Position numbers and translations under genes: made by a program. Below the pieces are notes generated by a model. That model did not search any database. It had not been told where the DNA came from and was given only the letters and a program-made list of their open reading frames with translations. DNA of 64,000 nucleotides from Mizuhopecten yessoensis (taxonomy: Eukaryota), in contig NW_018408494.1 of assembly GCF_002113885.1 (NCBI RefSeq), positions 319,316-383,315 of the forward strand, given 5' to 3'. Position 1 is the stretch's first letter. Every line of letters begins with the position of its first letter. Positions 3,609-50,100 of the stretch are shown piece after piece.

Positions 3609-6600
3609 ATGGCGATCTTCAGTGTTTACATCATCAACAAAGCCGGTGGTTTGATATACCAATATGACCACTCCGGAGCCAGACCCGAGGTGGAGAAGAC
3701 ATTCAGTTACCCTATTGAACTGGTGCTCAAGATTCACGACGAGAAACTTGTAGTGGCATTTGGAGAAAGAGATGGAATTAAAGGTGGGCGTGCCGATTCG
3801 GTTTCAGCGGTTGAGTTTGGCATCACACATGGATCTGACAATTCATAAGTCATAACAAACAACAAACTATCAGTTTAACTTTTCTCAGAAAGAAACGTTA
3901 ATAGGCGTTTTAGAGTCCACATGTGCATTCATATATACATGTACAATTAGTATCGGGTGCCAGTGGTTGGTACAAACTTTCAAGTACCATAAACGTGTAC
4001 AAATAGTTATAGCCCAAATTTCCACTGGTCCTGACTCCAGACTTAGACATTTTGACAGGCATATGTCTTCACCAGACTAAGAAATGTTGACAGGTAGATG
4101 TATCCATACATCTATCTTTCAAGATGTCTAAGTCTGGTGTAAGGACCAGAGGAAACTTTAATTATTATGTAGTCTCATCTACTCATTTAATAAATGATTG
4201 TTGCAGATTGATATGTTTATAACCAGATGATATTTATTTCGCATTTGTTAGTGGAAAGAAAACAAAATTAATCAACAGCCAAATAAGGATTCAAACCCTG
4301 TGAATCTTTTACCAACTTAGCTTCCTGGTCACTGGCTATCACCCAGTCCTTATATGATACAAAAGGAAAATTCCCTCTAGCTCAAAGCTAGAAGGCGACC
4401 GTGATCCTATGTACAATTAAAATCTGCCACACCTGATTACCAGTACGTCCATACCAATCAACCATATTTTATTTAAGTATTTGTCACCAAACACTCCTAT
4501 TTACAACCTAGATTTGGACTCTCCAAATGAATTAACATTCTACTAGCTGAGCTACAATTCCAACTGCATAAAGACTGGATTATCAAAAATAGCTCTGGGG
4601 TACTAATTAGGATAGGACATCAAGTCTTGGGTACAAGTGCTGGGGTACCAATGCACAGGTTACAAAACTGGAGTACAAGACTGGGGTGTCAAGGCTGAGG
4701 TACCAAGTCTGGGGTACCAAGGCTAGGATATACCAAGGCTAGGATACAAAGACTGAGGTACCAAAGCTAGGGTGCCATGACTAGGGTACCAAGTCTGGGG
4801 TATAAAGGCTAGGGTATCAAGGCTAGGGTACCAAAGCTAGGGTGCCATGACTAGGGTACCAATGCTAGGGTACCAAGTCTGGGGTACCAAGTCGGGGTTA
4901 CCAACGCTAGTTAGGGTACCAAGTCTGGGGTATCAAGGCTAGGGTACCAACTCTGGGGTACCAAGGCTAGGGTACCAACTCTGGGGTACCAAAGCTAGAG
5001 TTCCATGACTTGGGTACCAAGGCTGGGTTATATTACAAAGGCTGGGTGGGGTATCGGTGCAGAGGCTGGAAAACCATTATCATGGTAGGCCAGAAAGCAA
5101 ACTGTGTATATATATATATGGATTCAAAAAGTTTTCCACTTAACAATCAAGCACCATGTCTTATAATAAAGACATCAGTCTTCAATGGTATGTGTTTTAT
5201 AAATTGCAATACTAGTGATAATGTATTTTTTCTTCCACTCCTAATTATTTCAAACTTCAAACAGTATTCGAGATATTTTTAATATGTTATCATATTGATG
5301 CTAATGTTTATTTTCAGTTGGACACACTTTACTGTCAGTAAATGGTGTCCCAGCAGAGGGGCGCTTTTTGAAGAGTGATGGTCGGGACATCATGGATATC
5401 ATTGCTGCAGAAGAAAATTACCCAATTAGTCTCAAGTTTGGACGTACAAAACTGACTACAAATGAGAGAATCATGTTAGCCAGTATGTTTCACTCGTAAG
5501 TAATCTATCAATATATCGCACTACTTAAAAATATGACAGGTTCTGCTCCGAAAGATTTCATCAATACGGAAAGTATATCAAAATTTTCAAGGTGTTAAGT
5601 TTGGTCCAGAGTGACTGAAATAATTGATGGGTAGTAAAACAATGCAAAAACAATTGTAGCCTGTTGTTTTATCTCTGTATACATGTATATAACCTCTTGT
5701 CATATACAATGTAAGTATTTGTACCCTGTTGTTATATGTATTTTTATGCCCCCGCCATAAAATAGGGGGACATTTAGTGTTGCCCATGTCCGTCCCGTCC
5801 CATCGCATCCCGTCACGTCCTGTCCCATCCATGAGCGGGGGCACGGGGGCATTTATGTCTTACAGACATTTTCTAGTTAATATTAAGATATACAGTGTAT
5901 CTATTGGTAATCTATTTTTACTAAAAGATAAATGGTGCTTCATCTCTATTGCTACACGGAGATCCATTCCCTGTATAAATGACAAGTACAGTAAGACTGT
6001 TGACGCATAAAGATAAACTCTCTTTATTTGTAGACTGTTTTCTATATAAACTCTGTGTCTTTGTAGACTGTTTTCTGTATAAACTCTCTGTATTTGGAGA
6101 CTGTTTTCTATATAATCTCTCTATATTTGTAGTCTGTTTTCTATATAAACTTTCTATATTTGTAGACTGCTTTCTATATAAACTCTCTGGATTTTTAGAC
6201 TCTTTGGTAAGCAAACTCTCTGTATTGGTAGACTCTTTGTTATATGAACTCTCTGTATTTGTAGCCTCTTTGTTATATAAACTCTTTATATTTGTAGACT
6301 GTTATTTTATATAAACTCTCTGTATCTGTAGACTCTTTGTTATACAAACTCTATGTATTTTTAGAGTCTTTGTTATATAAACTCTCTTTATTTGTAGATT
6401 GTTTTCTATATAAACTTTCTATATTTGTAGACTGATTTCTATATTAACTCTCTGTATTTGTAGATTGTTTTCTTTCTAACCTCTTTGTATTTATAGACTG
6501 TTTTCTATACAAACTCTCTATATTTGTAGGCTGTTTTCTATATAAACTTTCTATATTTGGAGACTCTTTGTTTTACAAACTCTCTGTATATGTAGACTCT

Positions 6601-9600
6601 TTGTTATACAAACACTCTGTATTTGTAGACTATTTTCTATATAAACTCTGTGTCTTTGTAGACTGTTTTCTGTATAAACTCTCTGTATTTGGAGACTGTT
6701 TTCTATATAGACTCTCTATATTTGTAGTCTGTTTTCTATATAAACGCTCTATATTTGTAGACTATTATTTTATATAAACTCTCTATAATTCTAGACTGTT
6801 TTCTATATTAGCTCTCTGTATTTGTAGACGGTTTTCTATATTAACTCTCTGTATTTGTAGCCTCTTTGTTATATAAACTCTCTGTATCTGTAGACTCTTT
6901 GTTATGCAAACTCTCTGCATTTGTAGAGTCTTTGTTATATAAACTCTCTGTTTTTGTAGACTCTTTGTTATGCAAACTCTCTGCATTTGTAGACTGTTTT
7001 CAATATAAACTCTCTGTATCTGTAGACTCTTTGTTATATAAACTCTCTATAATTCTAGACTGTTTTCTATATGAACTCTCTGTATTTGTAAACTCTTTGT
7101 TATATATACTCTCTGTATTTGTAGCCTCTTTGTTATATAAACTCTTTATATTTGTAGACTGTTATTTTATATAAACTCTCTGTTTTTGTAGACTTTTTTC
7201 TATATAAACTCTCTGGATTTGCAGACTGTTTTCTATATATACTCTCTGTATTTGTAGATTGTTTTCTTTCTAACCTCTTTGTATTTATAGACTGTTTTCT
7301 ATATGAACTCTCTGTATTTGTATACTCTTTGTTATATAAACTCTCTATATTTATAGACTGTTTTCTATGTAAACTCTCTATATTTGTAGGCTGTTTTCTA
7401 TATAAACGCTCTGTAGTTGTAGACTCTTTGTTATGCAAACTCTCTGCATTTGTAGACTGTTTTCCATATAAACTCTCTGTATTTGAAGACTCTTTGTTAT
7501 ACAAACACTCTGTATTTGTAGACTGATTGCTATAGGATCACAACTGTCCCCTGAACCAAGGAGCTCTGGTATAGAAGTACTTGAGACGGATACTTTCAAA
7601 CTCCACTGTTTCCAAACCATGACAGGTTGTAGACTGTTTTCTATTTAAACTCTCTATATTTGAAGACTGTTTTCTATATATACTCTCTGTATTTGTAGAG
7701 TCTTTGTTATATAAACTCTTTATATTTGTAGACTGTTATTTTATATAAACTCTCTATAATTCTAGACTGTTTTCTATATGAACTCTCTGTATTTGTATAC
7801 TCTTTGTTATATAAACTCTCTGTATCTGTAGACTCTTTGTTATGCAAACTCTCTGCATTTGTAGACTGTTTTCTGTATAAACTCTCTATATTCGTAGACT
7901 GTTTTCTATACAAACTCTCTGTATTTGTAAACTCTTTGTTATATATACTCTCTGTATTTGTAGGCTGTTTTCTATATAAACGCTCTATATTTGTAGACTT
8001 TTTTCTATATAAACTCTTTATATTTGTAGACTGTTATTTTATATAAACTCTCTGTATCTGTAGACTCTTTGTTATGCAAACTCTCTGCATTTGTAGACTG
8101 TTTTCTGTATAAACTCTCTATATTCGTAGACTGTTTTCTATATTAGCTCTCTGTATTTGTAGACGGTTTTCTATATTAACTCTCTGTATTTGTAGTCTTT
8201 ATGTTATATAAATTCTCTGTATTTGTAGACCGTTTTCTATATAAACTCGCTGTATTTGTAGACTCTTGGTTATACAAACTCTCTGTATTTGTAAACTCTT
8301 TGTTATATATACTCTCTGTATTTGTAGATTGTTTTCTATATAAACTGGCTGTATTTGTAGACTCTTGGTTATACAAACTCTCTGTATTTGTATACTCTTT
8401 GTTATATAAACTCTCTTTATTTGTAGACTGTATACTATATAAACTATCTGTATTTGTAGACTGATTGCTATAGGATCACAACTGTCCCCTGAACCAAGGA
8501 GCTCTGGTATAGAAGTACTTGAGACGGATACTTCTATATAAACTCTCTTTATTTGTAGATTGTTTTCTATATAAACTCTCTATATTTGTAGACTGTTATT
8601 TTATATAAACTCTCTATATTTATAGACTGTTTTCTATATAAACTCTCTGTATTTGTAGACTCTTTGTTATATAAACTCTCTGTATTTGTAGACTGTTTTC
8701 TATATTAACTCTCTGTATTTGTAGACTGTTTGCTATAGGATCACAACTGTCCCCTGAACCAAGGAGCTCTGGTATAGAAGTACTTGAGACGGATACTTTC
8801 AAACTCCACTGTTTCCAAACCATGACAGGTATGTATATGTTTTTGTATGATTAAACAGTATTCAATGCAAAAAGTGCCCGGGGTGCTTAGCAGTTTTGGG
8901 AAATTAAAATAATTGCAAAACCTTCCAAAATTCTCAGCAAAACAATCTGTCTCAGGTAAATTGGTAAGTTATGGTTAAGGAAGGGATTGTCTATAAGAAT
9001 GCGGGGTAGGGAGGGGCATTTGTGGTGGAAGGGTAGCAAAGTCCTAATCTTATAACTTATAATATAAGCTAAGATACTATTGCTCGACCGGCTTGGCCTT
9101 TGCAACGCATATTTAGTAGCAATCTGTAGCGACAAGTCACTCAGAACTACCAATATGTGCTTGCACGCGAACGCAGTGATGGAGTATACGTAACAGCATA
9201 AGGGCTGTAATACAATACACATACAACAACACTGCCGACGTCCGTTTGCAGCACGTGGTCATCTGTAGCCACTATTAGCGCACAGCCACACAATAGCCAG
9301 CATTTTTTGTAGTTAACGTGGGACTAAGTCCACAATGCTACAAAAAACCAATCTGCCCAAACCGATTAAGAATGGTATCACAAGAAATTCACAAATTAAT
9401 GATTTGTGTACATATAAGCTGAGTTCGCCCCATACGCCAATTACTTGTTGATTAATAAGCTGTGTGATTTAAATATATATTGATTATATGTTTGTATGAT
9501 GATGTAGCCTGTTGATATGTATATATATAATTAAATGTTGTACATAATTTATGTCTCAGTTATTTGTTTAATTTAAAGTATAATATATAATATTGTACAG

Positions 9601-10410
9601 TGAACGAAAGAAGTCAAAAATCCTGTTTAATCTTGATTTTTTTCTTCCAAATGTTTGATATAATGGAATCATAACTTATAGACGTATCCTTCTTACAGAT
9701 AGCATAAATCCTTAGAATAACCAGCAAAATAGTCACGTAAATAATATTCAAAATCATACTTTTTCTAGTTCTACATGAATGAGCTAAGATGTGGTTGGGT
9801 GTCCACCATCAGGTTTGACTACATGTATAGTACCCTAAGCAAATTAGCTCTCAGCAAAAAAAATACCCAAGTTTGTAGTTAAATTAAAATATGATATCAC
9901 TTGCAGGCATCAAGTTCATCATTTTGGCTGACCCGCGGCAGATGGCCGTGGACGTGTTACTTAAAAAGCTGTATGAAGTCTACTCCGATTTTGCTCTCAA
10001 GAACCCATTTTACTCCTTAGACATGCCAATAAGGTAACAATACATTCACAACTCTAACCTGGTTATGTATGTGTGTGTATTGTGTAAAACTTATTCCCAG
10101 TACATGTATCACAACATTGTCCTCAGAAAGGACAACCACTGTTTCCTACTTTTTTGGAAAAGTTTTAAAATCAAAAGCATTTCTATCATCTAAGAAAAAA
10201 AAAGATCTTCACAATTTTAAATTGACAACTGGAGATGAGAATCTGTGTGTGAATTTGTGAAAACCAGTGTCAGTTTAGGAAAGATCCATCATAACTGTCC
10301 TGAAATTTTTCTGTAAACTTGCACATTTTATTTTCAGATGTGACCTGTTTGACACCAATCTTCAACAGGCGATAGAGCAATCGGAGAGACTGGGTATCAG
10401 TAATATATGA
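3609..10410 (+). CDS. TRAPPC4: Trafficking protein particle complex subunit 4 (synbindin/Trs23), 218 aa
   Basis: Exons 3609-3783, 5318-5495, 8725-8828, 9907-10033 and 10338-10410 are all GT-AG and total 657 nt in frame. Protein reads [18 protein letters not shown]...EKTFSYP...[54 protein letters not shown]...[29 protein letters not shown], the characteristic TRAPPC4 sequence. Confidence 0.96.
4625..5030. repeat. ~15-16 bp minisatellite (gggtaccaaggcta / ggggtaccaagtct) in TRAPPC4 intron 1
   Basis: About 25 degenerate units centred on GGTACC. Confidence 0.85.
5741..5878 (-). mobile_element. Minimal HINE/DINE-like (non-autonomous Helentron-type) element
   Basis: T-run followed by atgccccc..ggggga hairpin, a (gtccc)n microsatellite, the inverted gggggcat subterminal repeat and a ttctagtt end. 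Same architecture as the larger elements at 24.3 kb, 31.8 kb and 39.0 kb. Confidence 0.5.
7522..7625 (+). other. Full-length duplicate of TRAPPC4 exon 3 (104 nt) embedded in the 33-bp array
   Basis: Identical to 8725-8828 except one T>A (Phe>Ile). Flanked by tttgtAG and GTtgta. Confidence 0.92.
8460..8533 (+). other. 3'-truncated duplicate of TRAPPC4 exon 3
   Basis: First ~74 nt of exon 3 with the same T>A variant as the 7522 copy, then returns to repeat units with no donor. Confidence 0.9.
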
Positions 10411-11726
10411 TCTGGGTTGATATACACTCATCTTCATCTGGACTCAAACACTTCAGAATCTACAGTAATACCTGCCAGAGGCTTACGAATCTACAGTAAT
10501 ACCTGACAGAGGCTTACTGAATGTTTCCGGATGTTCAGTTCTGTACATGTACTTACCTGAAATCCATGGGTTCAACTCTCTGTACATATATTTTCTCTGT
10601 GATCCTGGAATATGTCAGGACAAAATTGAAGGCAAACAAAGAGCTATTTGATTGGTTCCAGGTAAAAAACACCTGAAAAATCCCTAGTTAGCCTGATACC
10701 GTTCCTTTGAAGATTACAGAGGAGCTGCATCCAACTTCAAAGCCAGTTAACTTGATTGTTTGGCTGCTTCACAATTCCTTTTGATGTTTATCAAAGACAT
10801 CATCCACAAGGTGTCAATTTGGTTTGGTTTTGTTATATTTTGTTTAACATCCTATTAACAGCTAAGGTCATTTAAGGACGTGCCTCCATGTGTGTTGTGT
10901 ATGTGTGCAACAGTGTATGTGTGTATGTGTGCTGGAGACAGGTGTAATTGCCTCCTTGTGATAGCACGGATCTAAGGTGTCGAGTAAAACACCTTCAATA
11001 TTGTCATGACATATTGCAGGAGTCAGAGAATATATGAATATTGGGAGCGAAACCCTTGGATTTCAACGATGAGTAATGTTTGACCATGTCTATTGTCATC
11101 TTTTCTTTAGATGCTTCAGAATCTACAGTGTTACCTGAAACAATTGTATTCTGAATCTGTTTCAAATTCTACCACATCTTAAGATCTGATCATATGAAAG
11201 TACTATTTGGCTTAAAATACCAAGGAACAAAAGGATCCGAGTTCACCAGATAGGAAACTGCACCTGGGATAAAACCTCCAGCAAATTTGAGTGGAAATCT
11301 ATGTGTAAGTGTGTGTTTATTATTGTCATTCCAGTATATATTTGTATACTATATATAGATTACTTACCATGGTACATCTTACACATATTTATGTTTTGCA
11401 TTATGAATAACTAAATTGTGCTTACATGTAACAAGAATGTATGTGACATAAATATCATACAGGTAATGTACAGTATACATATGTTAACGATTGTAAAGTA
11501 AGAATGTAAGCACTGAGATGAAGGAAAATGATGATCAATGTAATATTTGTATGATGTGAGTTTTGTTTGGTGTGAAGTGCATATGAATTGTGTGAGGAGA
11601 GAGCGAAAGAGAGAGAGATACAAATCTTGATTGTTGACTGATAGAATTTATCATTCCTGTGTGACATAGATAGAGATATCTCAACAAATATTAAGGTTTC
11701 GTGGGATGCTTTGCCGAAACGGAATA

Positions 11727-11930
11727 CAGTATACCAGGAAATTTTGCCTCGGTTTAACTATGCCTTTTTGGTCATCTGCAATGAGGGTAAAAATAAAATG
11801 ACAGCAAATATAAGTACAAGTATCAGCATATAACGTTATACCATGTGAAGAGCGAAATTAGAATAAGGTGAACATAGATGTTATTGGTGGAAGGCAAAAA
11901 TTTGACTGGGTGAAATTTACTGGTATACAG
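11727..11930. mobile_element. Tc1/mariner-type MITE (TA-flanked)
   Basis: ta|cagtataccaggaaattt ... aaatttactggtatacag|ta imperfect terminal inverted repeats. Confidence 0.65.
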
Positions 11931-16093: not shown

Positions 16094-16129
<36 letters not shown>

Positions 16130-23700: not shown

Positions 23701-25113
23701 AGTGAATTGTGGGTTGCAAAGATGATTTTGAATACGACATAATTCTGTCTCCAAACATGCTGACTGGGTACTGGGAGGACTGCATTAGAGGTGGCTGAAT
23801 TGCGAGAAAAAGTAATGAAAGTATTTCAGTATGAATGGAGATATATTTTCTGTTTAAGTTGTTTCAGATCATATAAAAACACAGCAGCCACTGCCCTCAA
23901 TGGAGACTAATATAATAGTTAATACACAAATTACGAAGAATTTGTAACCTTATTTTATATGAAATAGATGACAATGTCTGCAATCTGGAAATGCATGATG
24001 TTCATGATAAGTTACCTCCATGTAAGCGGTGTGGAGGGAGAATCTGGTGGGTGCCCGGGAATACTTCATGTCCTCTATGTACTGACGGAAGGCTGGCATT
24101 CCCTTCTGCTGTATGGCGTACATACTCTGTAAGGCAACAGGGTCCATACATTGTAACAAACAGTATACTAGTATACAGAAACTGATATCTCAAACAAGAG
24201 GCCTAAGAGACCTGTACTACTCAACTAGCTGTTACAAAATGGTTGTACACAAATATAAAATTTATTAAAGCTGTAATTGTTAAACAAAGACGTTTTATAC
24301 CAGATTAATTAACAACATATCCCAGAGTGATCTCGGTGCTCACCATAGTACCATCTTTATTAGTTCTAAGTCAGTTTGATATTTTCTCTTCTTTTCTCTT
24401 ATCTGTTTAATTGACTCATGTAAACAGTAAATGCACCTTGAGGTAAATTTTTATCTAAACTTAATACTGATGTGTATGAAAGCCAACCTTCAAAGTGAGT
24501 TTGTCATTTCACATATTTACTAGTACAGTACTAGATGTGAAAGAAATACAACTGATCATTACAATATCAGAAAGATCTGTTAAGTTCTTTCTGCAGCCAT
24601 CTTGTTTTTATGATCACTCTCAAAATGAAACATGCACAACTAAGGACCAAAGGCAGCCTGCATTTGATGGCCACCTGTCAATTGATTTGTTCAATCCTTC
24701 AGTCTCAAATGAAACATGCACAACAAGAGACCAAGGGGAACCTTCAAATTTGAGAAAGATCCCTCTAGTACATTCACTGTCAATCTCCAAGATGGCTGCC
24801 TGCTGGCCATTTTGTTTATCTGGTCAGTCTCAAAAGTAAACATGCACAAAAAGAGACCAATGGCAACCTACATATCAAGTTTGAGAAAGATCCCTCCTGC
24901 ACTTTCTGAGAAAAAGTGATAACAATGCAAGAATTGTTTAAGGACGGACGACAGACGACGGACAACTTACAAGAGGCAATTTGAATAGCCCGCCATCAAG
25001 TGACGATGGGTGAAAAAATGTCCAGCTGTATATCAACAAAAAGGGTTTTTATTTTACCTTACAATTTTATACCTTAGGGGAGGGGATCAAAGGAGCTTAA
25101 AATGTATGTCTGA

Positions 25114-25149
<36 letters not shown>

Positions 25150-31100: not shown

Positions 31101-34100
31101 ATAAAAGTACATGCAATGTCTGAAATTTTTATTTTCACAGATTTTCCTCATCTTTTTGATGACCTAGTTACAGTTGAGTTTAGTAAGATCCTGCATGTGG
31201 ATGATATGTACTATTGACTCTATCTGAAGGATTGATATTTCACTGTAGCTTAATTATATGTTTACAGTACTGTAAAAACTCGTGTAATTAACGCAGGTTT
31301 TATGTGTTGAAATTAAGTTTGAAGCAGATTACACAGCTATAAATACATTCAGGTTTGGGGGTTTTCTCAGAAAGATTGTCAATTTGCATGGTATATTAAT
31401 ACAATGTTAAGTGTTTAGAATTATTGCCCTTGCAACAGCTAAGGTCATATAAAGATGCTGATGGCAATATACATTACAAGTTGAAATGTCAAATCATATT
31501 AATACATCCATCTTTATAAAAAATTGACATAAGTTTCAAGAACATATTTTCAAATATCTAAATTTTGAAAAGGAAATGCAAAGGGATGTATTTAAGTAAT
31601 CTGGTAGTAACCCAATGCTAATGATGTAAATCACTGGCTTACATTTCCTCTGGCGAAATACCATCCACTTCCTTTCTGAATGGCGACAAAAATGGTGATG
31701 CTTTCGGATCCAGCTTTCCATTGTTGGTTAGGGAGTTGATCTGGTCGGGCACTTCTCTCTAGGGAAAACAATTTGGTAATAAGTACAACAAGAGGCCCAT
31801 GGGCCTTAACGCTCACCTGATATATTTATACAGAGAGTTGATTTCGTTTTTAACATGAACAGAAATATTATTCAAAGTGACAAAAAACAATAAAACCACC
31901 TTATTCAATATCAAGCATACAGATTTCAGACTAAAAAGGATTTGAAACTAGCACCTCTGATTCTAAACAAGGAAAATGAAGAAATTTTAGCACACTGACT
32001 CCCTTGAGCCCCACCCTACAGCCCTTGGGGGTAGGGCTGGCTCAAAATTTTCAAAGTATCAAACTGTCAACTCAAGGTTATAATTCCAATCAAGTTATTA
32101 ACATGNNNNNNNNNNNNNNNNNNNNNNNNNNNNNNNNNNNNNNNNNNNNNNNNNNNNNNNNNNNNNNNNNNNNNNNNNNNNNNNNNNNNNNNNNNNNNNN
32201 NNNNNNNNNNNNNNNNNNNNNNNNNNNNNNNNNNNNNNNNNNNNNNNNNNNNNNNNNNNNNNNNNNNNNNNNNNNNNNNNNNNNNNNNNNNNNNNNNNNN
32301 NNNNNNNNNNNNNNNNNNNNNNNNNNNNNNNNNNNNNNNNNNNNNNNNNNNNNNNNNNNNNNNNNNNNNNNNNNNNNNNNNNNNNNNNNNNNNNNNNNNN
32401 NNNNNNNNNNNNNNNNNNNNNNNNNNNNNNNNNNNNNNNNNNNNNNNNNNNNNNNNNNNNNNNNNNNNNNNNNNNNNNNNNNNNNNNNNNNNNNNNNNNN
32501 NNNNNNNNNNNNNNNNNNNNNNNNNNNNNNNNNNNNNNNNNNNNNNNNNNNNNNNNNNNNNNNNNNNNNNNNNNNNNNNNNNNNNNNNNNNNNNNNNNNN
32601 NNNNNNNNNNNNNNNNNNNNNNNNNNNNNNNNNNNNNNNNNNNNNNNNNNNNNNNNNNNNNNNNNNNNNNNNNNNNNNNNNNNNNNNNNNNNNNNNNNNN
32701 NNNNNNNNNNNNNNNNNNNNNNNNNNNNNNNNNNNNNNNNNNNNNNNNNNNNNNNNNNNNNNNNNNATCAAACTGCTACCTAATACTGATAATGCTAACC
32801 CAAATTGAATTACTTCCAATGGCAATTAAACAAATGTTGGTCCAAAATGTGATTTCCCTATATAAACTATAGTAAAGTTTACCCCCTGTACATACTAGTA
32901 CACTGTGGTAATACCTGTACACTGTGGTACATACCTGTACACTGTGGTACATACCTGTCCACTGTGGTACATACCAGTACCCTGTGGTAATACATGTACA
33001 AATTTCAAAAAGTTGGCAAGTATGTGTATATACAACATTATTTGAATTTGTGATTTCCCACCTCTATAAAGAGATCACCAACAGACCACCTCTTTAAAGA
33101 GGCCACCAACACACCACCTCTATAAAGAGGCCAACAACACACCACCTCTATAAAGAGGCCACCAACACACCACCTCTATAAAGAGGCCACCAACACACCA
33201 CCTCTATAAAGAGGCCACCTACATACCACCTCTATAAAGAGATCACCAACAGACCACCTCTATAAAGAGGCCACCAACACACCACCTCTATAAAGAGGCT
33301 CCCCAGGGGAAAACTTGAGACCCCAGGGTCAAGAAATTAACAATTTTGGTAAAGCACCCTAAGACCCTTCAATCTATGAAGAGTATTTGATTCTACCATA
33401 TAACGGTCTTGAGAAGAAGAATTTTGAAATTTCAGTCAATTCAACCCTTTTTGGCCCCACCCATCAGCCCCTGGGGGTCAGTCAGGGCTCATCAAACTGC
33501 TACCTAATACTGATAATGCTAACCCAAATTGAATTACTTCCAATGGAAATTAAACAAATGTTGGTCCAAAATGTGATTTCCCTATATANNNNNNNNNNNN
33601 NNNNNNNNNNNNNNNNNNNNNNNNNNNNNNNNNNNNNNNNNNNNNNNNNNNNNNNNNNNNNNNNNNNNNNNNNNNNNNNNNNNNNNNNNNNNNNNNNNNN
33701 NNNNNNNNNNNNNNNNNNNNNNNNNNNNNNNNNNNNNNNNNNNNNNNNNNNNNNNNNNNNNNNNNNNNNNNNNNNNNNNNNNNNNNNNNNNNNNNNNNNN
33801 NNNNNNNNNNNNNNNNNNNNNNNNNNNNNNNNNNNNNNNNNNNNNNNNNNNNNNNNNNNNNNNNNNNNNNNNNNNNNNNNNNNNNNNNNNNNNNNNNNNN
33901 NNNNNNNNNNNNNNNNNNNNNNNNNNNNNNNNNNNNNNNNNNNNNNNNNNNNNNNNNNNNNNNNNNNNNNNNNNNNNNNNNNNNNNNNNNNNNNNNNNNN
34001 NNNNNNNNNNNNNNNNNNNNNNNNNNNNNNNNNNNNNNNNNNNNNNNNNNNNNNNNNNNNNNNNNNNNNNTTTTTGTTGACCTTTGTCCATGGAAGGTCC

Positions 34101-37100
34101 CTGCAAAATTTCATTGAAATTGGTTCAGGGGTTTTGGAGAAGAAGTCGAAAATGTAAATTGTTTACGGACGCACGACGGACGACGACGGACAAAAGGCGA
34201 TCGCAATAGGTCACTTGAGACTTTGTCTCAGGTGACCTAAAAATCTACTTTTTCTGATATCTTTCTGAAAACATATCTCGGGAGTGTCTATGTTTTTTAA
34301 ATACTTTTATTAACTTGCTTTGTTTGTAAAACTGAACAATGTGCTTAGTAATAAGAAGTTAACATCACAATGTATTATAATTGTAGACTGATATTTTATG
34401 TTTTTAGGATTATGAAGAGCTAATATATGAGATAAAATGAAAGTCTAAATAATTATATAAGGACACACTACTTCACTCTTTCTGTGAATCCAAATTTTCT
34501 TGCATATATCTGACCAAACTTACATCAGACATATTGTCAGTTCTAAGTGAGCATAAATGTGATTCATCAGATTTAAAGATTGTTATACATCAATCAGATA
34601 ATTAAATAATAGTTACCATGGATACCATGTGATTGACATAACCTATCTTTATCCCTTCTTCACACATCTCTCTGGCTTGGGAAATCTGAAATTATAAAAA
34701 AAATTATGGTTGGTAAATGTCAATGTGAAGGGTATAACTGGTGTTACCTAGGTAGGTAGGAAGTTTTATAAAACAAGGATAAGGTGTGCATTTAATTTTA
34801 ACTGGTACAGTATGGGAAGTATATATAAATAATCAGTGTTTGATAAATACAGACTTCATATAGTTGTAGAAAGTTTCCCTTACTTCATATATGCAAAATT
34901 TAATATTATAAGTTATCACACAATATTTGTCACTGACTATCATATTGAAAGACTTCAAGTCTTTCATAATCAAAAAAAAACATCTTATGTGGACAATCTA
35001 TATCAACTCTAGAATTGTGTGTGTATCCTAGGTCAACAAGTACAAAAGTTAATGATACAGGTCACCTAGTACAGGTCATGTACCAAGGTCATTTGTAAAG
35101 GTCAACAAGTAAAGAGGTCACTTTAGCAGGTCATGAAGAGCAGAGGTCAGTTATACAGGTCAGTGAGTACAGAGGTCGTTTGCACAGGTCATTTAGTACA
35201 AAAACAAGGTTCCTAACTCACCTGTCTGGGGTAACACTTGAGTCGCTCTATGTAGACTTTAAAGTCAGCTTCCTTCTCAAACTTAGAAAAGCTTAGTAGT
35301 AGATGTATATCATTGTGAATGCCATCTTGGAATGTAATCGGGAAACACCACCTATAGACCAATTTGCAAATGGATGTAATTCACTGTTTAAGTTAACACA
35401 CTTTTTCGTGTAAGCAATTTGAAAAGGCAGGCATTTAATATATGCAGTGGACATAACCACTAGTGTCAGACTTTTGTAAGAACTTATTAAAATAATTTAT
35501 TTTCAAAACAATACTTTTACTATTTACAAATGTACTTGGGAGTCAGCCTTGTGTCCTCACAAATGAACAGGAGTTTGCAATGAAATACACTAGTCAGAGA
35601 TTTACATAAAATTTAAAAGACAAAATAAAATTGCCCATTGTTTTCAAACAAAGTCATCCAGAGGAATCAAAACACTGACAGCTATATGGAAAGCATCCTC
35701 AATGTCCAGGGGTTTCACTCACTTTCGCTCTCTGCACCCCTGGAATATGTCATTGAAAATTGAAGGCTCAGTGTGTGCCACCTTATTGATGAGACAAGAC
35801 GACTAGTTTGATCCTTTGATGTACATAAAAAAGAATCTCACGTTCGCGTAACAGTAAAAAATGACAGGCTCTGAAAATGAGTGTCGATCCTTTGTAATCT
35901 TCAAAGGACATGTATCAGTGTAGCGATTTGTCGGTTTTTTTTTACCCGAGACCAATCAAACAGCTATCTTTCTGCCTTCAATTTTGCTATGAAATATTCC
36001 AGGGGTGCAGAGAGCGAAAGCCCTGGATATCGAGGAAATGGATAGTTACCCGTTAAATTTGCAGGCCAGTAGGAAAGTCTTGAATTCCTCTTTGAGTAGT
36101 GCGAGGTCAAGTTTAGCTGCATCACTGATGGCGTCGGTGTTGATTTCCCTACATCTCTCCAGGAACTTCTCCACTGTAATCTGTTGGGTACATAACTTGA
36201 TCAATTACTGCTTACTTTCCAATATTTCACACACATCTTGATACACAATTTTAATTATTAACTTGATGAGGTTTATTGATAGCTATATACCCACAATAGC
36301 CCACAAAGTAATACTATATATAGATGTACAGTTAAACCCTGATTAGAGGTCACACACACGTACAAGTCATGCGTCTGTTGTGGAAATTAAACTTGCACCT
36401 ATACCAGTGCATCATGCTTCCAATTTTTTATGGCATTGACTGTAATTTTTGTTTTGATGACTTAACCGCTACAGTTATCAAAAACAAAAGCAACAGGCTT
36501 AAGAATTTTAAATGAATATGCAAGATAAGTGTCACTTCAAAGTATCTGACTCAGGATTTGTTAATTTATGAATAAAGAATGAATAAAATTACTGATAGAT
36601 CAAACACTGACAGATTTCTTCTTAGCTAGACTTGAATACATAGTGCCTTTAGGGATACAATTTAGGGACAAAATCAGTGCATTTGGTATATGTACTGAGG
36701 CTAACATCGAGGACACAGTTTTTAATTCAAAAGGGAGGAAAAGAATCACAGTGAACTTAATTTAACTTGGCTATGATTTAGGGAATTAAGCATAGTCAGT
36801 AGAGCTAAGGACTTCAACGTTCAGCTAACATAGAATTATGAAAAAGAAAGTGACCTCAGTCACATGTACCTTCCATTCTTTAAGTGCTTCTAGTCCAATA
36901 TCATCTAACTTGTCGTCGTCATCATGAACACCGCAGTAAGAGGCAAACTCTGGACTGGTCTTTAATCTCCAACTCCATACTTCCTCAAATAGTCTGGTAA
37001 CTACTTTATCTTCTGGGCTGGCCCTTAGTGAGAGGAAATATTCTAATCGTTTTTAAAACGTACCATATCGTACTGTATCAGTATTAGCATCAAAGACACC

Positions 37101-37436
37101 CCAGATGGGAATATCTTTAGCATTTGTGTGGTAAATACTTAAAATAATCCTTTAGGTACTGGCTGTGACGTAAGAAAAATATGAAAGCAAAGAATCAGCC
37201 CGAAATAAAAAGCCGTTTAACGGTACTGAACAGACAGGTCTACAGTAGATTTTACGTTACAGGATGCCTGCATATTGACAAAGCGAAAGTAGGCCACGTC
37301 GCATCACTTCATTTGTCTTTCATAGCAACAAGTTTAAACAAAACCATTGGCTTATATGTTCTTTAAAACATGTTATAGTGTCTTTGCTTACTCACTCGTT
37401 ATCAACGTAACTCAGCGGACTGATTTCGAACTCCAT
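20800..37436 (-). CDS. DUF885-family protein (putative zinc metallopeptidase), 17 exons, 608 aa
   Basis: Exons 37436-37396, 37023-36870, 36180-36050, 35351-35222, 34685-34617, 31758-31643, 31089-31005, 30268-30014, 29593-29499, 28865-28749, 25568-25508, 24126-24016, 23528-23464, 22922-22851, 21855-21753, 21310-21244 and 20954-20800. All are GT-AG and phase-consistent (1827 nt). DUF885 motifs present: LPNGQRYY, TPQEVHNLGLQEVERI, DGSRPGIYYVN, LHEGEPGHHLQ, EGWGLYCE, RAARLVVDTGLH, RYVTWPGQACAYKIG, FDVREFH...GPVPL. Confidence 0.9.
22272..22388. mobile_element. Short hairpin MITE-like element (intronic)
   Basis: gggtttgttacaaatgtctgaaat ... atttcagacatttgtaacgaaccc inverted repeats. Confidence 0.6.
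22990..23080. mobile_element. ~90-bp TTAA-type MITE; second copy at 40434-40524
   Basis: aactcattcacccctgaa ... ttcaggggtgaaggagttaa. The second copy reads ttaaccctttcacc ... ggtgaaagggttaa. Confidence 0.6.
24311..25018 (+). mobile_element. HINE-like non-autonomous Helentron element
   Basis: aacaa start with gctcacc subterminal motif, internal direct repeats (tctcaaaatgaaacatgcacaac...gacc), a (gacg)n microsatellite, and a 3' ccatc..gatgg hairpin followed by an A-run. Confidence 0.5.
26005..28778 (-). repeat. 48-bp minisatellite built from the DUF885 exon 10 donor junction (58 units, near-perfect)
   Basis: Minus-strand unit TTACGTTAACACCTCCCACTTCTCTGACAC|gtaagtgtatcataaccg is the last 30 nt of exon 10 plus 18 nt of intron. 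Confidence 0.96.
30226..30905 (-). repeat. 102-bp minisatellite built from the DUF885 exon 8 acceptor junction (~7 units)
   Basis: Units start at 30226, 30329, 30431, 30533, 30635, 30737 and 30839. Each holds ~59 nt of intron ending in cAG plus the first ~43 nt of exon 8 (GTGTATATGAGGAGGACGAGACCCAGTATAGGGTGTTGTACCC). Confidence 0.93.
31787..34243 (+). mobile_element. HINE-like non-autonomous Helentron element with internal core repeats, spanning both N-gaps
   Basis: 5' aacaagaggccca..tgggcct..gctcacctga; repeated core (32767-32865 matches 33491-33588); (gacg)n microsatellite at 34165-34190; 3' ggtcacttgag..ctcaggtgacc hairpin plus aaaa. Confidence 0.6.
32887..33300. repeat. Two adjacent minisatellites: ~20 bp (tacactgtggtacatacctg) and ~28 bp (caccacctctataaagaggccaccaaca)
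   Basis: About 5-6 and 8-9 units respectively, lying inside the HINE-like core. Confidence 0.85.
35696..36036. mobile_element. TIR MITE (341 bp), unexpanded relative of the 42.2-44.2 kb element
   Basis: TIRs tcctcaatgtccaggg..ctttcgctctctgcacccctggaatat and atattccaggggtgcagagagcgaaag.ccctggatatcgagga. Confidence 0.85.
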
Positions 37437-37727
37437 ACTTTATCTGTCGGGCGTGGACAATGTCTTACATGTTGAGTGGAAGCACAATTATAAAAATAAA
37501 ACCGGACCTCGTCATTAAATCCGGAATTTATCGATCCATATTTTTTTTTAAATCTCTATCATTTCGTATTGGGTTTCACAAAATGATTGTTATTGAATTA
37601 TAAATAAAAGTTCAGTTATTTAATGACAATATTCAAATTAAATTATTGAAACAATTCTAAAAGTTTGCAAAGTGTTAAAAAAAATGCAGTGGAATTTGAT
37701 CTCACTCACGATCAGGTGATGGAGAGG

Positions 37728-38067: not shown

Positions 38068-38171
38068 AACATGGTGTCAATAGTCTATGATTGTCCATTC
38101 CTAGTCATTTACCTTGTCAGAGTCTGGTATTGATCACATGTATAATGTTTGAGGATTATTTGTACTTGTAG

Positions 38172-41152: not shown

Positions 41153-44100
41153 TCAGTACACAGTCAGGTTTTTCATGATGACAACATCGGAGCCGCGAGG
41201 ATTCTTGCCCCTTGGCTGCCAGGATGGGACATCACTGCCGTAGTTGGGAGCCCAGTAATAATGGCGGCGGATCTGATTACTGAGTTCACACAGCTTAGTA
41301 ACACCATCCACAACATAGGCTTGTATATCAGTGTTCTCTGGCTTCAACCGTCCACTCTCCAGCAAACTGGCAAAGGCCTGGAAAACAAACAACAGTATCA
41401 ATTAATCTGGGTATCTCATTAATATCCTCTTTCAAATTCATTAAAATCAGCCAAATATTATTCACTGTTGTGGGAAAAAAAATACCGGTAGCATAACTCA
41501 CTCATGTTGAAATAACAAAACAGCAAATATGAAATCTTATCCAGATTTAGATTTTCTGTGCTATATTATATATAGCATGCTTGCCAACGCTCCCTATTTA
41601 GATGGAAGACTCCTGATTTTGGACCCTGAAATTTAATGTTGCCAGCCAGTGAATTTGCTGGACTATTCCTATATTCTAAGATATAATAATTTCATCTGAA
41701 AGAACAACTCAAAGTATGTCATTTTAATCTAAATGGTTATTTTGTCCCTAAGGGTATATAGACACATTTTATTTATGTTTTTAATTGGGAGCACACAGAA
41801 TCTCCCCCATGAAAATCTCAAAAGTAGTTAAGTAGGTTACTGTACATGATCATCTACACTGTAAGTTGGTGTACAATGTTGACTTTTGTTAATGACACAG
41901 CAACAACTTACAATACAGGCAGGTTCTTCCAGCTTGTTTCCCCAGATGAATATACTGGTAAGGGTTGTGTTGGTCTTCATGGCGTCGGCCAGGGCACACA
42001 GGCCCTTGTTTCCAATGCCATTACTTGCCACCACCAAACTACAGATGTACATTGAATACATAAGGATGGTTCACAATCAAATAATTCCACAAGTTATTTC
42101 AAACCAATGAATTAAAATATTATTCCACAAAAGGTAAATTGTCTGTGTATCAGTACAGTCACCCTAGATACTCCAGGGGTAACCGTTACGCTCACTTTCG
42201 CTCTCTGCACCCCTGGAATATGATAACCAAATTGAAGGCATGCAGCTTGCTATTTGATTGTTCTCGGGTAAAAGAAAACCTGACCAATTGCTAAACCAGT
42301 CACTTTTACCGTTACGCGACCGGCAGATTCTTCTGATGTACATCAAAGGATCAAACTAGCCTTCTCGTCTCACCTACAAGATGATGCACACTGCACTAGT
42401 CTTCTCGTCTCACCTACAAGGTGATGCACACTGCACTAGTCTTCTCGTTCCACCTACAAGATGATGCACACTGCACTAGTCTTCTCGTCTCACCTACAAC
42501 ATGATGCACACTGCACTAGTCTTCTCGTCTCACCGACAACATGATGCACACTGCACTAGTCTTCTCGTCTCACCAACAAGGTGATGCACACTGCGCCTTT
42601 TATTTTGCCATGACATATTCTAGGGTTGCAGAGAGTGAAAGTCACACTGCACTAGTCTTCTCGTCTCACTTACAAGGTGATGCACACTGCACTAGTCTTC
42701 TCGTTCCACCTACAAGATGATGCACACTGCACTAGTCTTCTAGTCTCACCTACAAGGTGATGCACACTGCACTAGTATTCTCGTCTCACCTACAAGATTA
42801 CACACTGCACTAGGGTTCTCGTCTCACCTAGAAGATTACACACTGCACTAGTCTTCTCGTCTCACCCACAAGATTACGCACTGCACTAGTCTTCTCGTCT
42901 CACCTACAAGGGGATGCACACTGCACTAGTCTTCTCGTCTCACTTACAAGGCGATGCACACTGCACTAGTCTTCTCGTTCCACCTACAAGATGATTCACA
43001 CTGCACTAGTCTTCTCGTCTCACCTACAAGATGAGGCACACTGCACTAGTCTTCTCGGCCCACCTACAAGGTGATGCACACTGCACTAGTCTTCGCGTCT
43101 CACCTACAAGATTACACACTGCACTAGTCTTCTCGTCTCACCCACAAGATTACGCACTGCACTAGTCTTCTCGTCTCACCTACAAGATTACACACTGCAC
43201 TAGTCTTCTCGTCTCACCCACAAGGTGATGCACACTGCACTAGTCTTCTCGTCTCCCCTACAAGATGATGCACACTGCACTAGTCTTCTCGTCTCGCCTA
43301 CAAGGTGATGCACACTGCACTAGTCTTCTCGTTCCACCTACAAGATGATGCACACTGCACTAGGCTTCTCGTCTCACCTACAAGGTGATGCACACTGAAC
43401 TAGTCTTCTCGTCTCCCCTACAAGGTGATGCACACTGCACTAGTCTTCTCGTTCCACCTACAAGATGATTCACACTGCACTAGTCTTCTCGTCTCACCTA
43501 CAACATGATGCACACTGCACTAGTCTTCTCGTCTCACCAACAAGGTGATGCACACTGCGCCTTTTATTTTGCCATGACATATTCTAGGGTTGCAGAGAGT
43601 GAAAGTCACACTGCACTAGTCTTCTCGTCTCACTTACAAGGCGATGCACACTGCACTAGTCTTCTCGTTCCACCTACAAGATGATTCACACTGCACTAGT
43701 CTTCTCGTCTCACCTACAAGCTGATGCACACTGCACTAGTCTTCTCGTCTCACCAACAAGGTGATGCACACTGCGCCTTTTATTTTGCCATGACATATTC
43801 TAGGGTTGCAGAGAGTGAAAGTCACACTGCACTAGTCTTCTCGTCTCACTTACAAGGCGATGCACACTGCACTAGTCTTCTCGTCTCACTTACAAGGCGA
43901 TGCACACTGCACTAGTCTTCTCGTTCCACCTACAAGATGATTCACACTGCACTAGTCTTCTCGTCTCACCTACAACATGATGCACACTGCACTAGTCTTC
44001 TCGTCTCACCTATAAGGTGATGCACACTGCACTAGTCTTCTCGTCTCCCCTACAAGATGATGCACACTGCACTAGTCTTCTCGTCTCACCTACAAGGTGA

Positions 44101-47100
44101 TGCACACTGCGCCTTTTATTTTGCCATGACATATTCTAGGGTTGCAGAGAGTGAAAGTGATCTTAAACCTGGAGTAGTGAGGATGATGTACAGTAAAAAA
44201 CCTGTCTAATTGGTGCCTGAATATTTGAACATCTCGTCATATCGTATATGATATATATTGATAATACTTAGTCTAGTGTAGTGTTTGGAGTTCTGGCCTC
44301 TGTCAAATAAAACACCCAGATAATACTTACGTCTCTAGTGTAGTGTTATAGGTGGCTATAGCCTCTGCCAAGTGCATAGCACCATCATCTTCCAGTCTGT
44401 TGAACCCTAGATCAAGGATTTTGATGGATGTGTTGTTCTTCAAAACTTTGGCAAGTTCTTTTGTCCCATCTCGGGTGATTCTATTGCTATAAAAAAAAAC
44501 CAGTTCTAACAAAAGTGATCAATAAAACAAAGTTCAAATAAAGAATATTTTTTTAGAAAAGTAAATTATGCCACAAAGAAGTTTGGAATGTCTTTCAAAT
44601 GATTTTGAGAAATTTCAGTGAGAAGTCAAAACATAAATTTCATCATGAAGGGCTCACCAGCTGAGATCTAGATAGTTGAAAGTCATATTAGCCATCAAAT
44701 TTTCAGCCAATCGTGTCGCTCCAAAATCTCTCATATCATATTTCTGTAGATGGAGTTCTTCTATTGATGTATTCACCTGGAAAGATATGAAAAATACAGA
44801 CACAGATATGTAGGCATTATGCTCTAAAAGGCAGTGTAACATGAAGTATGCTAACGTTATAACAGCCATTTTAATTATCACTTTATTTAAATGTGAGGTA
44901 AACAGTCTTTTAAGATTCTAAACAGTCGAAGAATTGGAAAGAATACAAGAGTGAAGTCAAAACGTTTCGTCATAATCAGTAATAAGACATACTGGTCAAG
45001 AGCAATGAAACCTATAAGAGGTTATAGGAGATAACGGGGGTGAGGAAATCTCCAATGGTTACGGAGGGAGTGAGGAAACCTATAAGAGGTTATAGGAGAT
45101 AACAGGGGTGAGGAAATCTCCAATGGTTACGGAAGGAGTGAGGAAACCTATAGAGGTTATAGGAGATAACGGGGGTGAGGAAATCTCCAATGGTTACGGA
45201 GGAGTGAGGAAATCTATAGAGGTTATAGGAGATAACAGGGGTGAGGAAATCTCCAATGGTTACGGAAGGAGTGAGGAAACCTATAGAGGTTATAGGAGAT
45301 AAAAGGGGTGAGGAAATCTCCAATGGTTACGGAGGAGTGAGGAAATCTATAGAGATTATAGGAGATAACAGGGGTGAGGAAATCTCCAATGGTTACGGAG
45401 GGAGTGAGGAAACCTATAGTGGTTAAGGGAGAAGACAGCTGTAATGAAATCTATGGGGTTCTTATAAAAGAACATCTAATATCCACTTCTAATTAAAATT
45501 CCTTGCAGTCAATATAAGACAATGATTTCTTACTTTGAGCATCTTAGCAAAGTGGACAGTTGTCTCCTCCTGACAGCTGAAAATGAGGGGTCTGTTTACA
45601 TTGAGTGCCTTCAGGGTACTGTTTCTGAAGAGTACTGTGGGGAGTGCAATAACTGCTTCAATCGTCTGAAACACAAAGATCAGAAGTATGATTTGATTAT
45701 CGTATGTTACAAGATCATCCGCAAAAAAATCATAGCCTCAAACAAGATTACAGCACACTATCAATATTTTATACACTAAGATACAAAGAACAATACCTTA
45801 TTATTTATGTTTTTGATACATTATCATAAAATCACACATAGTATTATACAGAGGTAATGGTGGTGTTGTGGTTACTGTGAATGGAATTTCTCCATTTGAA
45901 AAAGTAATGAAAATTGTCTTTATTCGTTGTTAATGTTTCATCTTGCATATTAAATCAATAAACATAATATTCATCATCACACTAGTTACTAGAGTATGTT
46001 GATACGAAAATTTGAAATATGTCATTATTGTACCATGTCTTACATTCTATATAATTATATACACACAGCAAATTTTAAATTTTGGATCAACAACAAACTC
46101 ACAATATATGGTACCAAGTTACTTTGGCAAAATACCGGTGACTCAATCCAATACACATTGCCGAAACACTATGCTTGGAGGTAAAAACAAAACAATAATA
46201 AATTGACTTCTTTATTTATAATTAATATTTAAAGTGGTTTCAATACCAGGTATAATTCAAACATTATCTGCTTAATTCCTCAGAGAAAATTAAAAAAAAG
46301 ACGGGTCTTGGGACTCTATACTATTCAACACATCTCCAGTCTCACCAGGTCTAGAGCCTCTACTATTTGATACTTACCATGTCGGTATCTCCCAGGTCTA
46401 GAGCCTCTTCTATTTGATACTTACCATGCCGGTATCACCCAGGTCTAGAGCATCTACTATTTGATACTTCCCATGTCGGTATCACCCTGGTCTAGAGCCT
46501 CTACTATTTGAAATTTACCATGTCGGTATCACCCTGGTCTAGAGCCTCTACTATTTGATACTTACCATGTCGGTATCACCCAGGTCTAGAGTCTCTAAGA
46601 TTTGATACTTACCATGTCAGTATCACCCAGGTCTAGAGCCTCTACTATTTGATACTTACCATGTCGGTATCACCCAGGTCTAGAGCCTCTAAGATTTTGT
46701 TTACTTGTAACATCTGGGCAAAACACATTCCTCCTCTGTTCCCAATCTTGTTTCCATTTAATCTCAGCACTCGCAAACTCTCATTTTTCTGAAGACAAAA
46801 ACAGCAATGGTAGCCATACAAAATTAAACTTTCGTACATATGGCATCTACACACCATACTTCACATACAAAATTAAACTTTTGTACATATGGCATCTACA
46901 CACCATACTTCACATACAAAACAATCCTATCTTTCAACTTATGGATTAATTTCTCCACTTAATACATATTGCATGGATTAATTTCTCCACTTAATACATA
47001 TTGCATGGATTAATTTCTCCACTTAATACATATTGCATGGATTAATTTCTCCACTTAATACATATTGCATGGATTAATTTCTCCACTTAATACATATTGC

Positions 47101-50100
47101 ATGGATTAATTTCTCCACTTAATACATATTGCATGGATTAATTTCTCCACTTAATACATATTGCATGGATTAATTTCTCCACTTAATACATATTGCATGG
47201 ATTAATTTCTCCACTTAATACATATTGCATGGATTAATTTCTCCACTTAATACATATTGCATGGATTAATTTCTCCACTTAATACATATTGCATGGATTA
47301 ATTTCTCCACTTAATACATATTGCATGGATTAATTTCTCCACTTAATACATATTGCATGGATTAATTTCTCCACTTAATACATATTGCATGGATTAATTT
47401 CTCCACTTAATACATATTGCAAGAATAAAACCTTTTTTGGATAAAAATCTCTGTAGAACTATTTATATGTCGGAGTATATACACATTTTATCAAAGTGTA
47501 GAGAGAATTGCATAAATTGTGGTTTCTTTTGCAGAGTTGAGCAATGGTTGGATGCATCAAAGAGGCATTTGTTAGATCTCTATACAAATACCTAGAGTAT
47601 AACATAGAAAATATATAACAACATTATGGTAATATTACAGCAACAACAGTCTAATGTATAATAACAGTATAATGTATAATAACAGTATAATGTATAATTA
47701 CAGTATAATAACAGTCTAATGTATAACAACAGTATAATGTATAATTACAGTATAATGTATAATAACAGTATAATGTTTAATTACAGTATAATGTATAATA
47801 ACAGTATTATGTATAATAACAGTATAATGTATAATTACAGTATAACGTATAATAAAAGTATAATGTATAACAACAGTATAATGTATAATTACAGTATAAT
47901 GTATAATAACAGTATAATGTAATAATGTATAATTACAGTATAATGTATAATTACAGTATAATGTATAATTACAGTATAATATATAATTACAGTATAAGGG
48001 CAGTATGAATGCAGTAAAAGTACAGTATAATGTATAATTACAGTATAATGTATAATTACAGTATAATGTATAATTACAGTGTAAGTGCAGTATGAATGCA
48101 GCGAAAGTACAGTATAATGTATAATTACAGTATTATACAGTATAATGTATAATTACAGTATTATACAGTATAATGTATAATAACAGTATAATGTATAGCT
48201 ACAGTATAATGTATAATTACAGTATAATGTATAATTACAGTATAATGTATAATTACAGTTTAAAGTATAATTACAGTTTAATGTATAATTACAGTATAAG
48301 TGCAGTAGGAATGCATTATAAGACTAAGTATGTTTGATATGTGGTATGACTATTTTGTAGTATAGGTTATTTATAAATACTAAGTACATACATGTAAGGC
48401 CTTGGCGATTGCCTCCGCTCCCTCCGACTCAATGTCATTACACATCAGATTCAAATACTTCAGAGTCACCGTCTCCTACAAGCAAATATAATAAAGACAA
48501 TAAAAAACTGTATTACTCCAGGTAACTCTTAAAACTGTATTGCTCCAGGTAACTCTTGAAACTGTATTACTCCAGGTAACTCTTGAAACTGTATTACTCC
48601 AGGTAACTCTTAAAACTGTATTACTCCAGGTAACTCTTCTACAAGGATCTTGGTGGCAAAGTATGAAAGCAGTCAAAATATATACAAGGTAGAACTATAT
48701 CTCACAAGGTAGATTTATTATATATATTAGTCTTATCCCATCATCAGGTGAATTTACTCTCCTCACCAACCTCTGCAATTTGGCAATAAGTTCAGTCTTT
48801 ATTACAGATGAGGTGTGTTTAATTTGCCTTCATTATAGGAGTGACCTACCTCGTTGGTGCTATTAGTCCATTTTTCAATTTTTATTTTTTTATTTTTTTA
48901 AATAACCCAAAAAGTACCTGTGCTTTATACACTAGCGTGCACAATACGCAAATATTTACGGTATTACTAAATCAACAGGTAGATTTTCTTCATGTCTTAT
49001 CCAATCATCAGGTGAATTTACTCCTCACAGATCTCAAGCAATTTGGTGACAAGTTTAGTCTTTATTACAGATGAGATGTGACTTACCTCGAGCAGTTTTG
49101 CAATATGTTTTGCACCCACACTTGTGAGGTTATTGTAGCGGAGGTCCAGACCGTCGACGTATGTATTGTTACACAGAGTTTTATACAGAGCCTCTGCATC
49201 ACTGTCCACCAGACGTTTGTCCGTCAGCAGCTTGTTGTTCCCGGCCAGGTACAGGTCCATAGACTCCTTAAATTCACTGTAATTTACAATCATCATTATT
49301 ATAAGTCACAGTAGACTTTTACAAGATACCATAGAGCTTACATGTGACTTAATGTAACAAATTGCTATAACACACAGTCATCAACATACAATTTTGCTGG
49401 AATTGATTCCAACTTACTATCATGTGGCTTTACACTAGAAATGGCATAACTAGCATGTACATAGGTTTAAAAGGTAATATACTGTAATACAAATCAATCT
49501 CATTTTAATGAAAACTGAATGGCAAATTATGAATTAGGGATACATTATACTAACAGGAATGATATGGATATAAATTTAATGAATTTTAATAATATTGTAT
49601 GACTAGTGAGTAGCTATCAGCCTAACTATATGTAATTAGAATAATTTTGAGTTAATTTATGAGATCCAAACTTATTACAGGAATCAAATATTTTTAATAA
49701 TCGCAAATCTGTCAGAAAACAAATGCAGGTTCGAGATTGTTCACATTCGGAAAGAGCTGAATTTTAACAGGATGTTGATCACAAAGATATTATTTAGAGG
49801 ACAAAAGATATACAATTGTGAGGAAAAGGAATGTAATGTTTAGGGTGCATTTATGCACAGAAGTTGTAAATAGAGTGACATGTATCAGGACAACACAGAA
49901 CAGACATCAGGTAAAGTCGGTCAGTTACTGTAAGTGGCAATGGTGACAGGAGACTGAAAGAGCAGCACAAGAAAATCTAAAATGGGAATTGCTCAAAATA
50001 CAAATTCTTTAAAACCTGTTTTCTCTTAAATTGTGGGCTATCTAAACATTTTACAATGTTTGAATTAATCCTGTCTTTGTAATGTGTACATAAGGGTCAG

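Follow-up and report, generated by a model that had tools for sequence, protein, structure and literature searches.

Minisatellites in which each repeat unit spans an exon-intron boundary are known from amphioxus, where they occur in Adh3, the globin genes BflGb6 and BflGb9, TnC and PGBD5 (PMC3087553, PMC3902484). They are called mirage minisatellites, a name that these two papers credit to Canestro et al. 2002. Their units are 10-160 bp long, and they have been proposed as raw material for intron gain; alleles differ in array length, and somatic instability is described at Adh3 (PMC3087553, PMC3902484). They evolve in concert and leave splicing undisturbed, and the origin of the class is stated as unclear (PMC3087553). 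The 37-bp variable number tandem repeat (VNTR) in intron 7 of human F7 is similar: its first unit spans the donor, and the downstream pseudo-donors are functional but silent under a 5'-to-3', first-come choice of site (PMC1557585). The Rogers model, which is taken up in PMC3087553, derives new introns from AG/GT proto-splice sites that are duplicated in tandem. Here we describe four minisatellite arrays at splice junctions of three genes, TRAPPC4, DUF885 and LRRC34, in a 64,000-nucleotide stretch of DNA from the scallop Mizuhopecten yessoensis (the window, whose positions are used throughout).

These arrays are mirage minisatellites and resemble the F7 VNTR; an earlier note on this DNA, which recognised no named system in them, was wrong on that point. 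As in amphioxus, the unit lies over either exon-intron boundary and is specific to its locus, the GT or AG is duplicated, splicing is regular where checked (TRAPPC4 and DUF885), and the repeats evolve in concert. Unlike the amphioxus cases, the scallop arrays are found in a bivalve, reach about 80 copies, show a donor bias that was measured genome-wide, and share junctions between genera. The donor arrays have in common with the F7 VNTR a first unit that spans the donor, but the latter is a single human locus with a donor only, and the available part of PMC1557585 describes neither an acceptor counterpart nor persistence across species. As in the Rogers model, tandem copies of splice signals are a substrate for new exon-intron structure; unlike in that model, the scallop arrays show no new intron or exon, and 17 of 17 DUF885 exon boundaries are conserved across four scallops. 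A literature search for mirage minisatellites in bivalves found no report, which is weak evidence of absence. What is new is that for three of the four arrays further scallop genera have an array at the corresponding junction, and that tandem arrays throughout the genome are enriched in donor words but not in the strong acceptor word. On balance we consider it probable that the arrays are tolerated, long-lived mirage minisatellites that are re-templated by the conserved junction at one end; no function is shown for them. The arrays and the exons on which they end, with copy numbers from Tandem Repeats Finder (TRF), are as follows.

6013-8737, plus strand: 33-bp acceptor array of TRAPPC4, about 80 units.
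8725-8828, plus strand: authentic TRAPPC4 exon 3, joined in RNA reads to the end of exon 2 at 5495, GT..AG.
26005-28778, minus strand: 48-bp donor array of DUF885 exon 10, 57.8 copies, 99%.
28749-28865, minus strand: DUF885 exon 10, from the exon map, with RefSeq match.
30221-30953, minus strand: 102-bp acceptor array of DUF885 exon 8, 7.2 copies, 6 decoys.
30014-30268, minus strand: DUF885 exon 8, PF05960 at E 1e-17, with RefSeq match.
46345-46691, minus strand: 47-bp donor array of LRRC34 exon 4, 7.4 copies, 6 decoys.
46660-46788, minus strand: LRRC34 exon 4, from the exon map, 88-98% identical in three scallops.

Contig C5167, which holds the window, belongs to a short-read assembly of 987.6 Mb in 82,659 contigs. 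Exon maps were drawn from open frames with GT-AG ends, homology being judged exon by exon, and comprise five exons of TRAPPC4, 17 of DUF885, nine of LRRC34, the three seen of C8orf33/DUF4615 and three of a gene at the left window edge, together 65 junctions. Sybindin matches fall on TRAPPC4 exons 1 and 4, and DUF885, on the minus strand, agrees with RefSeq XP_021368710.1 contiguously and at 100% identity in each of its 17 exons. The N gaps at 32106-32766 and 33589-34070 sit within DUF885 intron 5 and hide no exon, because exons 5 and 6, which join in phase 0, adjoin in the RefSeq protein (residues 153-175 and 176-213) and in three other scallops. No N gap lies inside or abuts any of the four arrays.

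TRF and the exon maps bear out the central claim of the earlier note: the four arrays (units of 33, 48, 102 and 47 bp, mutually unrelated in sequence) lie where it had placed them and span 4 of the 65 junctions, namely the acceptors of TRAPPC4 exon 3 and DUF885 exon 8 and the donors of DUF885 exon 10 and LRRC34 exon 4. Its estimate that these make up about a third of the arrays in the window holds among arrays longer than 300 bp (4 of 11) but not at a period of at least 10 (4 of 21). When all 65 junctions were checked, nearby copies of the junction-centred 24-mer, every one on the intron side, numbered 70 at TRAPPC4 exon 3, 57 at DUF885 exon 10, and 6 each at DUF885 exon 8 and LRRC34 exon 4; the remaining junctions had no tandem copies. 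The TRAPPC4 unit consists of 21 nt of intron end and 12 nt of exon start, and the DUF885 exon 10 unit of 28 nt of exon end and 20 nt of intron start. The splice dinucleotide is intact in most decoys (AG in 65/71 at TRAPPC4 and 6/6 at DUF885 exon 8, GT in 57/57 at DUF885 exon 10 and 5/6 at LRRC34). The last unit is the functional acceptor of TRAPPC4 exon 3 and of DUF885 exon 8 (30269/30268), and the first unit is the functional donor of DUF885 exon 10 (28749/28748) and of LRRC34 exon 4 (46660/46659). That the exon-proximal unit is always the functional one was correctly observed before but is uninformative, because, by forced geometry, any junction-spanning duplication keeps the intact exon on the end unit and puts all other copies in the intron.

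The TRAPPC4 region, 5250-10450, was checked against DNA contigs from runs of two independent studies. Contigs cross both array edges, leading into the repeats from unique sequence on the left and out of the final unit through exon 3 on the right, and array-unit contigs stand at 30-60x single-copy depth. The TRAPPC4 array is therefore real, which for this array answers the earlier doubt as to existence outside the assembly. It contains two copies of exon 3 sequence.

7522-7625, plus strand: whole copy of TRAPPC4 exon 3, 104 nt with 1 mismatch, AG before and weak GT after.
8460-8533, plus strand: partial copy of TRAPPC4 exon 3, 74 nt, from sequence match.

These copies are without DNA depth in two other individuals, in which exon 3 itself is single-copy, and they are therefore either private to the reference (allele-specific) or misassembled. 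The bin of the whole copy has a trace of RNA depth with no joint listed. In the rest of the genome no exon 3 sequence was found. The 48-bp unit of DUF885 exon 10 is present genome-wide only at the DUF885 locus and on a gapped 6.2-kb scaffold, C1308, that consists solely of this unit, including variant units. Because of this scaffold, the unit is to be regarded as abundant and its copy number as uncertain in the short-read assembly. A dispersed or transposon-borne satellite was considered and rejected, the 48-bp unit being confined to its locus and that repeat-only scaffold, exon 3 to its locus, and the four units being unrelated.

Regular splicing is undisturbed in TRAPPC4, at low RNA depth, and in DUF885 according to its RefSeq model, which uses authentic sites only. 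For TRAPPC4, the joint between 5495 and 8725 is carried by 11 raw reads with 8 different starts and by one RNA contig. None of the joints listed involves a decoy, at a depth that leaves decoy use below about 25% possible. Use of a decoy would lead to a stop at codons 2-28 in most cases and later in several, where the earlier note had given 1-26 codons with one exception. Its suggestion that the arrays act as sponges or poison switches finds no support. A poison design read from these early stops was rejected, since the stop after the DUF885 exon 10 decoys is the TAA that GTAA yields in a phase-2 intron, AT-rich intron sequence yields stops, and periods divisible by three occur in 6 of 19 junction arrays seen, which is chance level; the RNA shows the authentic junction only. 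The mirage acceptors may seem to have a weak pyrimidine tract (TTTYCAG in 0/6 versus 17/127), but the difference is not significant (P 0.34).

Synteny of the gene cluster extends to Ylistrum, Pecten and Argopecten, and the cluster was compared across these and Mizuhopecten (four species, one gene cluster, about 52 junctions in each of the other three). Each of the three has 3-4 junction arrays. In this comparison of orthologous introns, which the earlier note had proposed, three of its four arrays have a counterpart at an identical junction elsewhere: the array at the donor of LRRC34 exon 4 is common to Mizuhopecten, Argopecten and Ylistrum (where it is decayed), the DUF885 exon 10 donor array to Mizuhopecten, Pecten and Argopecten, and the DUF885 exon 8 acceptor array to Mizuhopecten and Ylistrum. 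The TRAPPC4 array is absent in Argopecten. Pairs of species with an array at the same junction number 7 versus 1.2 expected (P about 6e-4), and these data suggest long persistence at least as much as a high birth rate.

The LRRC34 exon 4 arrays are best fitted by one old array held in step with the conserved exon end. In all three genera the unit is 47 nt long and the first decoy lies at +17; the first units of Mizuhopecten and Ylistrum are identical at 40/47 positions, while their fourfold sites are 57% identical (48-57% between species, with synonymous sites at about 55%), and variants confined to decoys are common to different genera. Yet the decoys are nearest to the exon of their own species in Mizuhopecten and Argopecten, and mixed in Ylistrum. 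Register, unit identity and common decoy-only variants, together with this tracking of the own exon, are what suggest the single origin. At the DUF885 junctions unit lengths differ (102 versus 56 bp at exon 8, 48 versus 39-40 bp at exon 10), and because Mizuhopecten has breakpoints unlike those of the other genera, repeated birth or re-derivation would appear to be at work there as well. In DUF885 intron 10 of Argopecten (L066:15624-17563) a further array, 71 bp x27, holds pieces resembling the exon 10 end and intron start of Pecten, and is a putative detached and derived mirage minisatellite that has lost the donor.

An older remnant is found at LRRC34 exon 2.

49033-49046, minus strand: 14-nt fossil copy of the end of LRRC34 exon 2, 54 nt downstream of the donor, GT lost.

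This copy is identical to the exon end of Pecten and has 3 mismatches to Mizuhopecten's own exon; it is a fossil that keeps the ancestral exon state. The earlier note's older two-copy case is upheld to the extent of this exon-end copy, but the large duplicate downstream of exon 2 is intron only.

Enrichment at junctions, the check which that note had put forward, is real but uneven: it is found for donor words, the window and the orthologs, but not for the strong acceptor word or a myosin set. With expectations from arrays placed randomly in collapsed sequence, the window has 4 anchored arrays versus 1.0 expected (P 0.02, the window having been chosen after the fact), and the three scallop orthologs 9 versus 3.5 (P 0.01, the junctions being partly the same ones). 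Oysters have 0 versus 2.4 expected (0-1 in 58 junctions), amphioxus DUF885 has 0 versus 0.4, and abalone has 2 versus 1.0. In DUF885 of Haliotis three junction arrays were noted in 32 junctions (exon 8 donor, exon 11 donor, exon 16 acceptor), and the class of junction arrays reaches gastropods. About 140 myosin junctions, an independent set chosen blind to repeats, yielded two clear donor arrays (35 bp x3, 40 bp x5) versus about 1.6 expected, and replicate the phenomenon but not the excess.

Genome-wide, we scored the share of occurrences of a word that start three copies 15-45 nt apart. Donor words do so in 2218/19714 (11.3%) for CAGGTAAGT and 9671/93518 (10.3%) for DDGGTAAGT, and four control words in 3.0, 2.7, 4.8 and 2.0%, the 4.8% being that of the one-letter control DDGATAAGT; donor words are thus in tandem 2.2-5.7x more often. 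The strong acceptor word TTTYCAGG is not enriched but under-represented (0.7% versus 1.9% for its control; one word, one control). For equal numbers of single occurrences, the matches listed in contigs C1-C123 include about 15 distinct arrays with the donor word versus 1 with the one-letter control. No two of the listed genome-wide arrays have the same unit, so they do not form one mobile family, and by eye several look coding upstream of the GT. Taken at face value, the word counts would put the number of donor arrays at roughly one to several thousand and their share of all donors at a few percent, which agrees with 2/32 donors in the window.

How such arrays might arise and last can be outlined. 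A local tandem duplication would by chance include a splice junction, and the array would then grow by ordinary minisatellite turnover, that is, slippage, unequal exchange and conversion. It would be tolerated because the spliceosome takes the first donor and the last acceptor and all extra copies are intronic, as is shown for TRAPPC4 and, by the RefSeq model, for DUF885. The conserved functional end unit may re-template the array and so give it long persistence or allow re-expansion, whereas free intronic arrays would decay; over-representation and recurrence at the same junction would then be due mainly to the end unit being a conserved functional junction. Selection might trim the set, donor decoys being silent under a first-come choice of the 5' site and strong acceptor decoys being purged and scarce. 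Several points weigh against this account. The exon-anchored enrichment is modest, and the sole fully independent set, myosin, is not significant; acceptor arrays are as frequent as donor arrays within the anchored sets; the word counts are copy-weighted, have few control words and are not tied to annotated exons; the comparison is limited to four species and one gene cluster; and the differing DUF885 breakpoints also fit repeated independent births.

Junctions, donors above all, could instead be hotspots of birth, at which polymerase pausing, R-loops or spliceosome assembly lead to breaks or template switches and junctions with microhomology are hit again in different lineages. The genome-wide excess of donor words, the differing breakpoints at DUF885 exons 8 and 10, several more arrays that stop short of a junction by no more than 30 nt, and an AAGT in LRRC34 exon 4 about 49 nt upstream of the donor's AAGT are consistent with this. 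We nevertheless think it rather unlikely, since the LRRC34 unit, 47 nt in each of the three genera, misses the register of that microhomology by 2 nt, and the common decoy-only variants favour one origin. Chance overlap in a minisatellite-rich genome, in a window picked because it holds several arrays and with a donor-word excess that reflects the word composition of arrays, would account for a window P of only 0.02 obtained after the fact, for the lack of enrichment in the myosin set and for the 4.8% of the one-letter control itself. It is a poor explanation of donor words at least twofold above all four controls, of about 15 distinct arrays versus 1, or of the ortholog count and the same-junction recurrence, and we hold it to be quite improbable.

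Still less credible is a functional device, in which decoy arrays of variable length would tune expression by acting as U1/U2AF sponges or as poison switches. The mostly intact GT and AG of the decoys and the persistence of arrays across genera at some junctions would suit it, but every array is missing from at least one close genus, the Ylistrum LRRC34 decoys are without donor consensus, the stops match what intron sequence gives, and the 11 RNA reads show no decoy joint, within the limit on rare use given above. Arrays produced by short-read assembly are the least plausible of all, although a gap filler could have produced the 57 near-identical 48-bp units and the embedded copies of exon 3, and these copies are unseen in two other individuals; the TRAPPC4 units and both edges in independent DNA, and the fact that three further assemblies have matching arrays at these junctions, refute this reading for the arrays' existence. 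A broader proposition goes beyond tolerated, re-templated arrays: that junction-anchored arrays exist by the thousand in scallop genomes, that concerted evolution of exon end and decoys keeps them at unchanged splice sites from genus to genus, intronic repeats exchanging sequence with coding exons, and that the donor bias stems from splicing-coupled birth or survival. We put this forward tentatively, as possible but doubtful.

Other features of the region were recorded. Some arrays stop 27-45 nt or less short of a splice site without spanning it (35086-35191, 46815-46921 and 48504-48638 in the window, L041:1300-1488 and L049:667-1456 outside it); an excess of arrays near junctions may reach beyond the mirage class. 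The 40-bp array at 42355-44110 lies within a dispersed element, with an array-free relative at about 35690-36020, and is transposon-borne, not derived from a junction. The 39-bp array at 62679-63911 has strong self-complementarity, with a short inverted block near 63500-63580, and 55700-57600 holds, as judged by eye, a broken reverse-transcriptase-like remnant of a long interspersed nuclear element (LINE). DUF885, labelled a bacterial family in Pfam, is here an animal gene of 17 exons at 20800-37436, and intron-rich members are present across molluscs, amphioxus, cnidarians and arthropods. In three scallops a called C8orf33/DUF4615 gene spans the entire DUF885 gene on the opposite strand (L064:7167-26301, L065:6557-25997, L066:8379-24014), and this nested antisense arrangement probably holds in the window too.

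The interest of the scallop arrays lies in their persistence across genera and in the asymmetry between donors and acceptors. In bivalves they are of practical relevance for gene prediction, primer design and short-read assembly. Descriptions of mirage minisatellites have so far dealt with one gene at a time. With several genomes and with cases that number, as a rough figure, one to several thousand, scallops make birth versus persistence, the rule of first donor and last acceptor, and intron gain by tandem duplication testable at genome scale.

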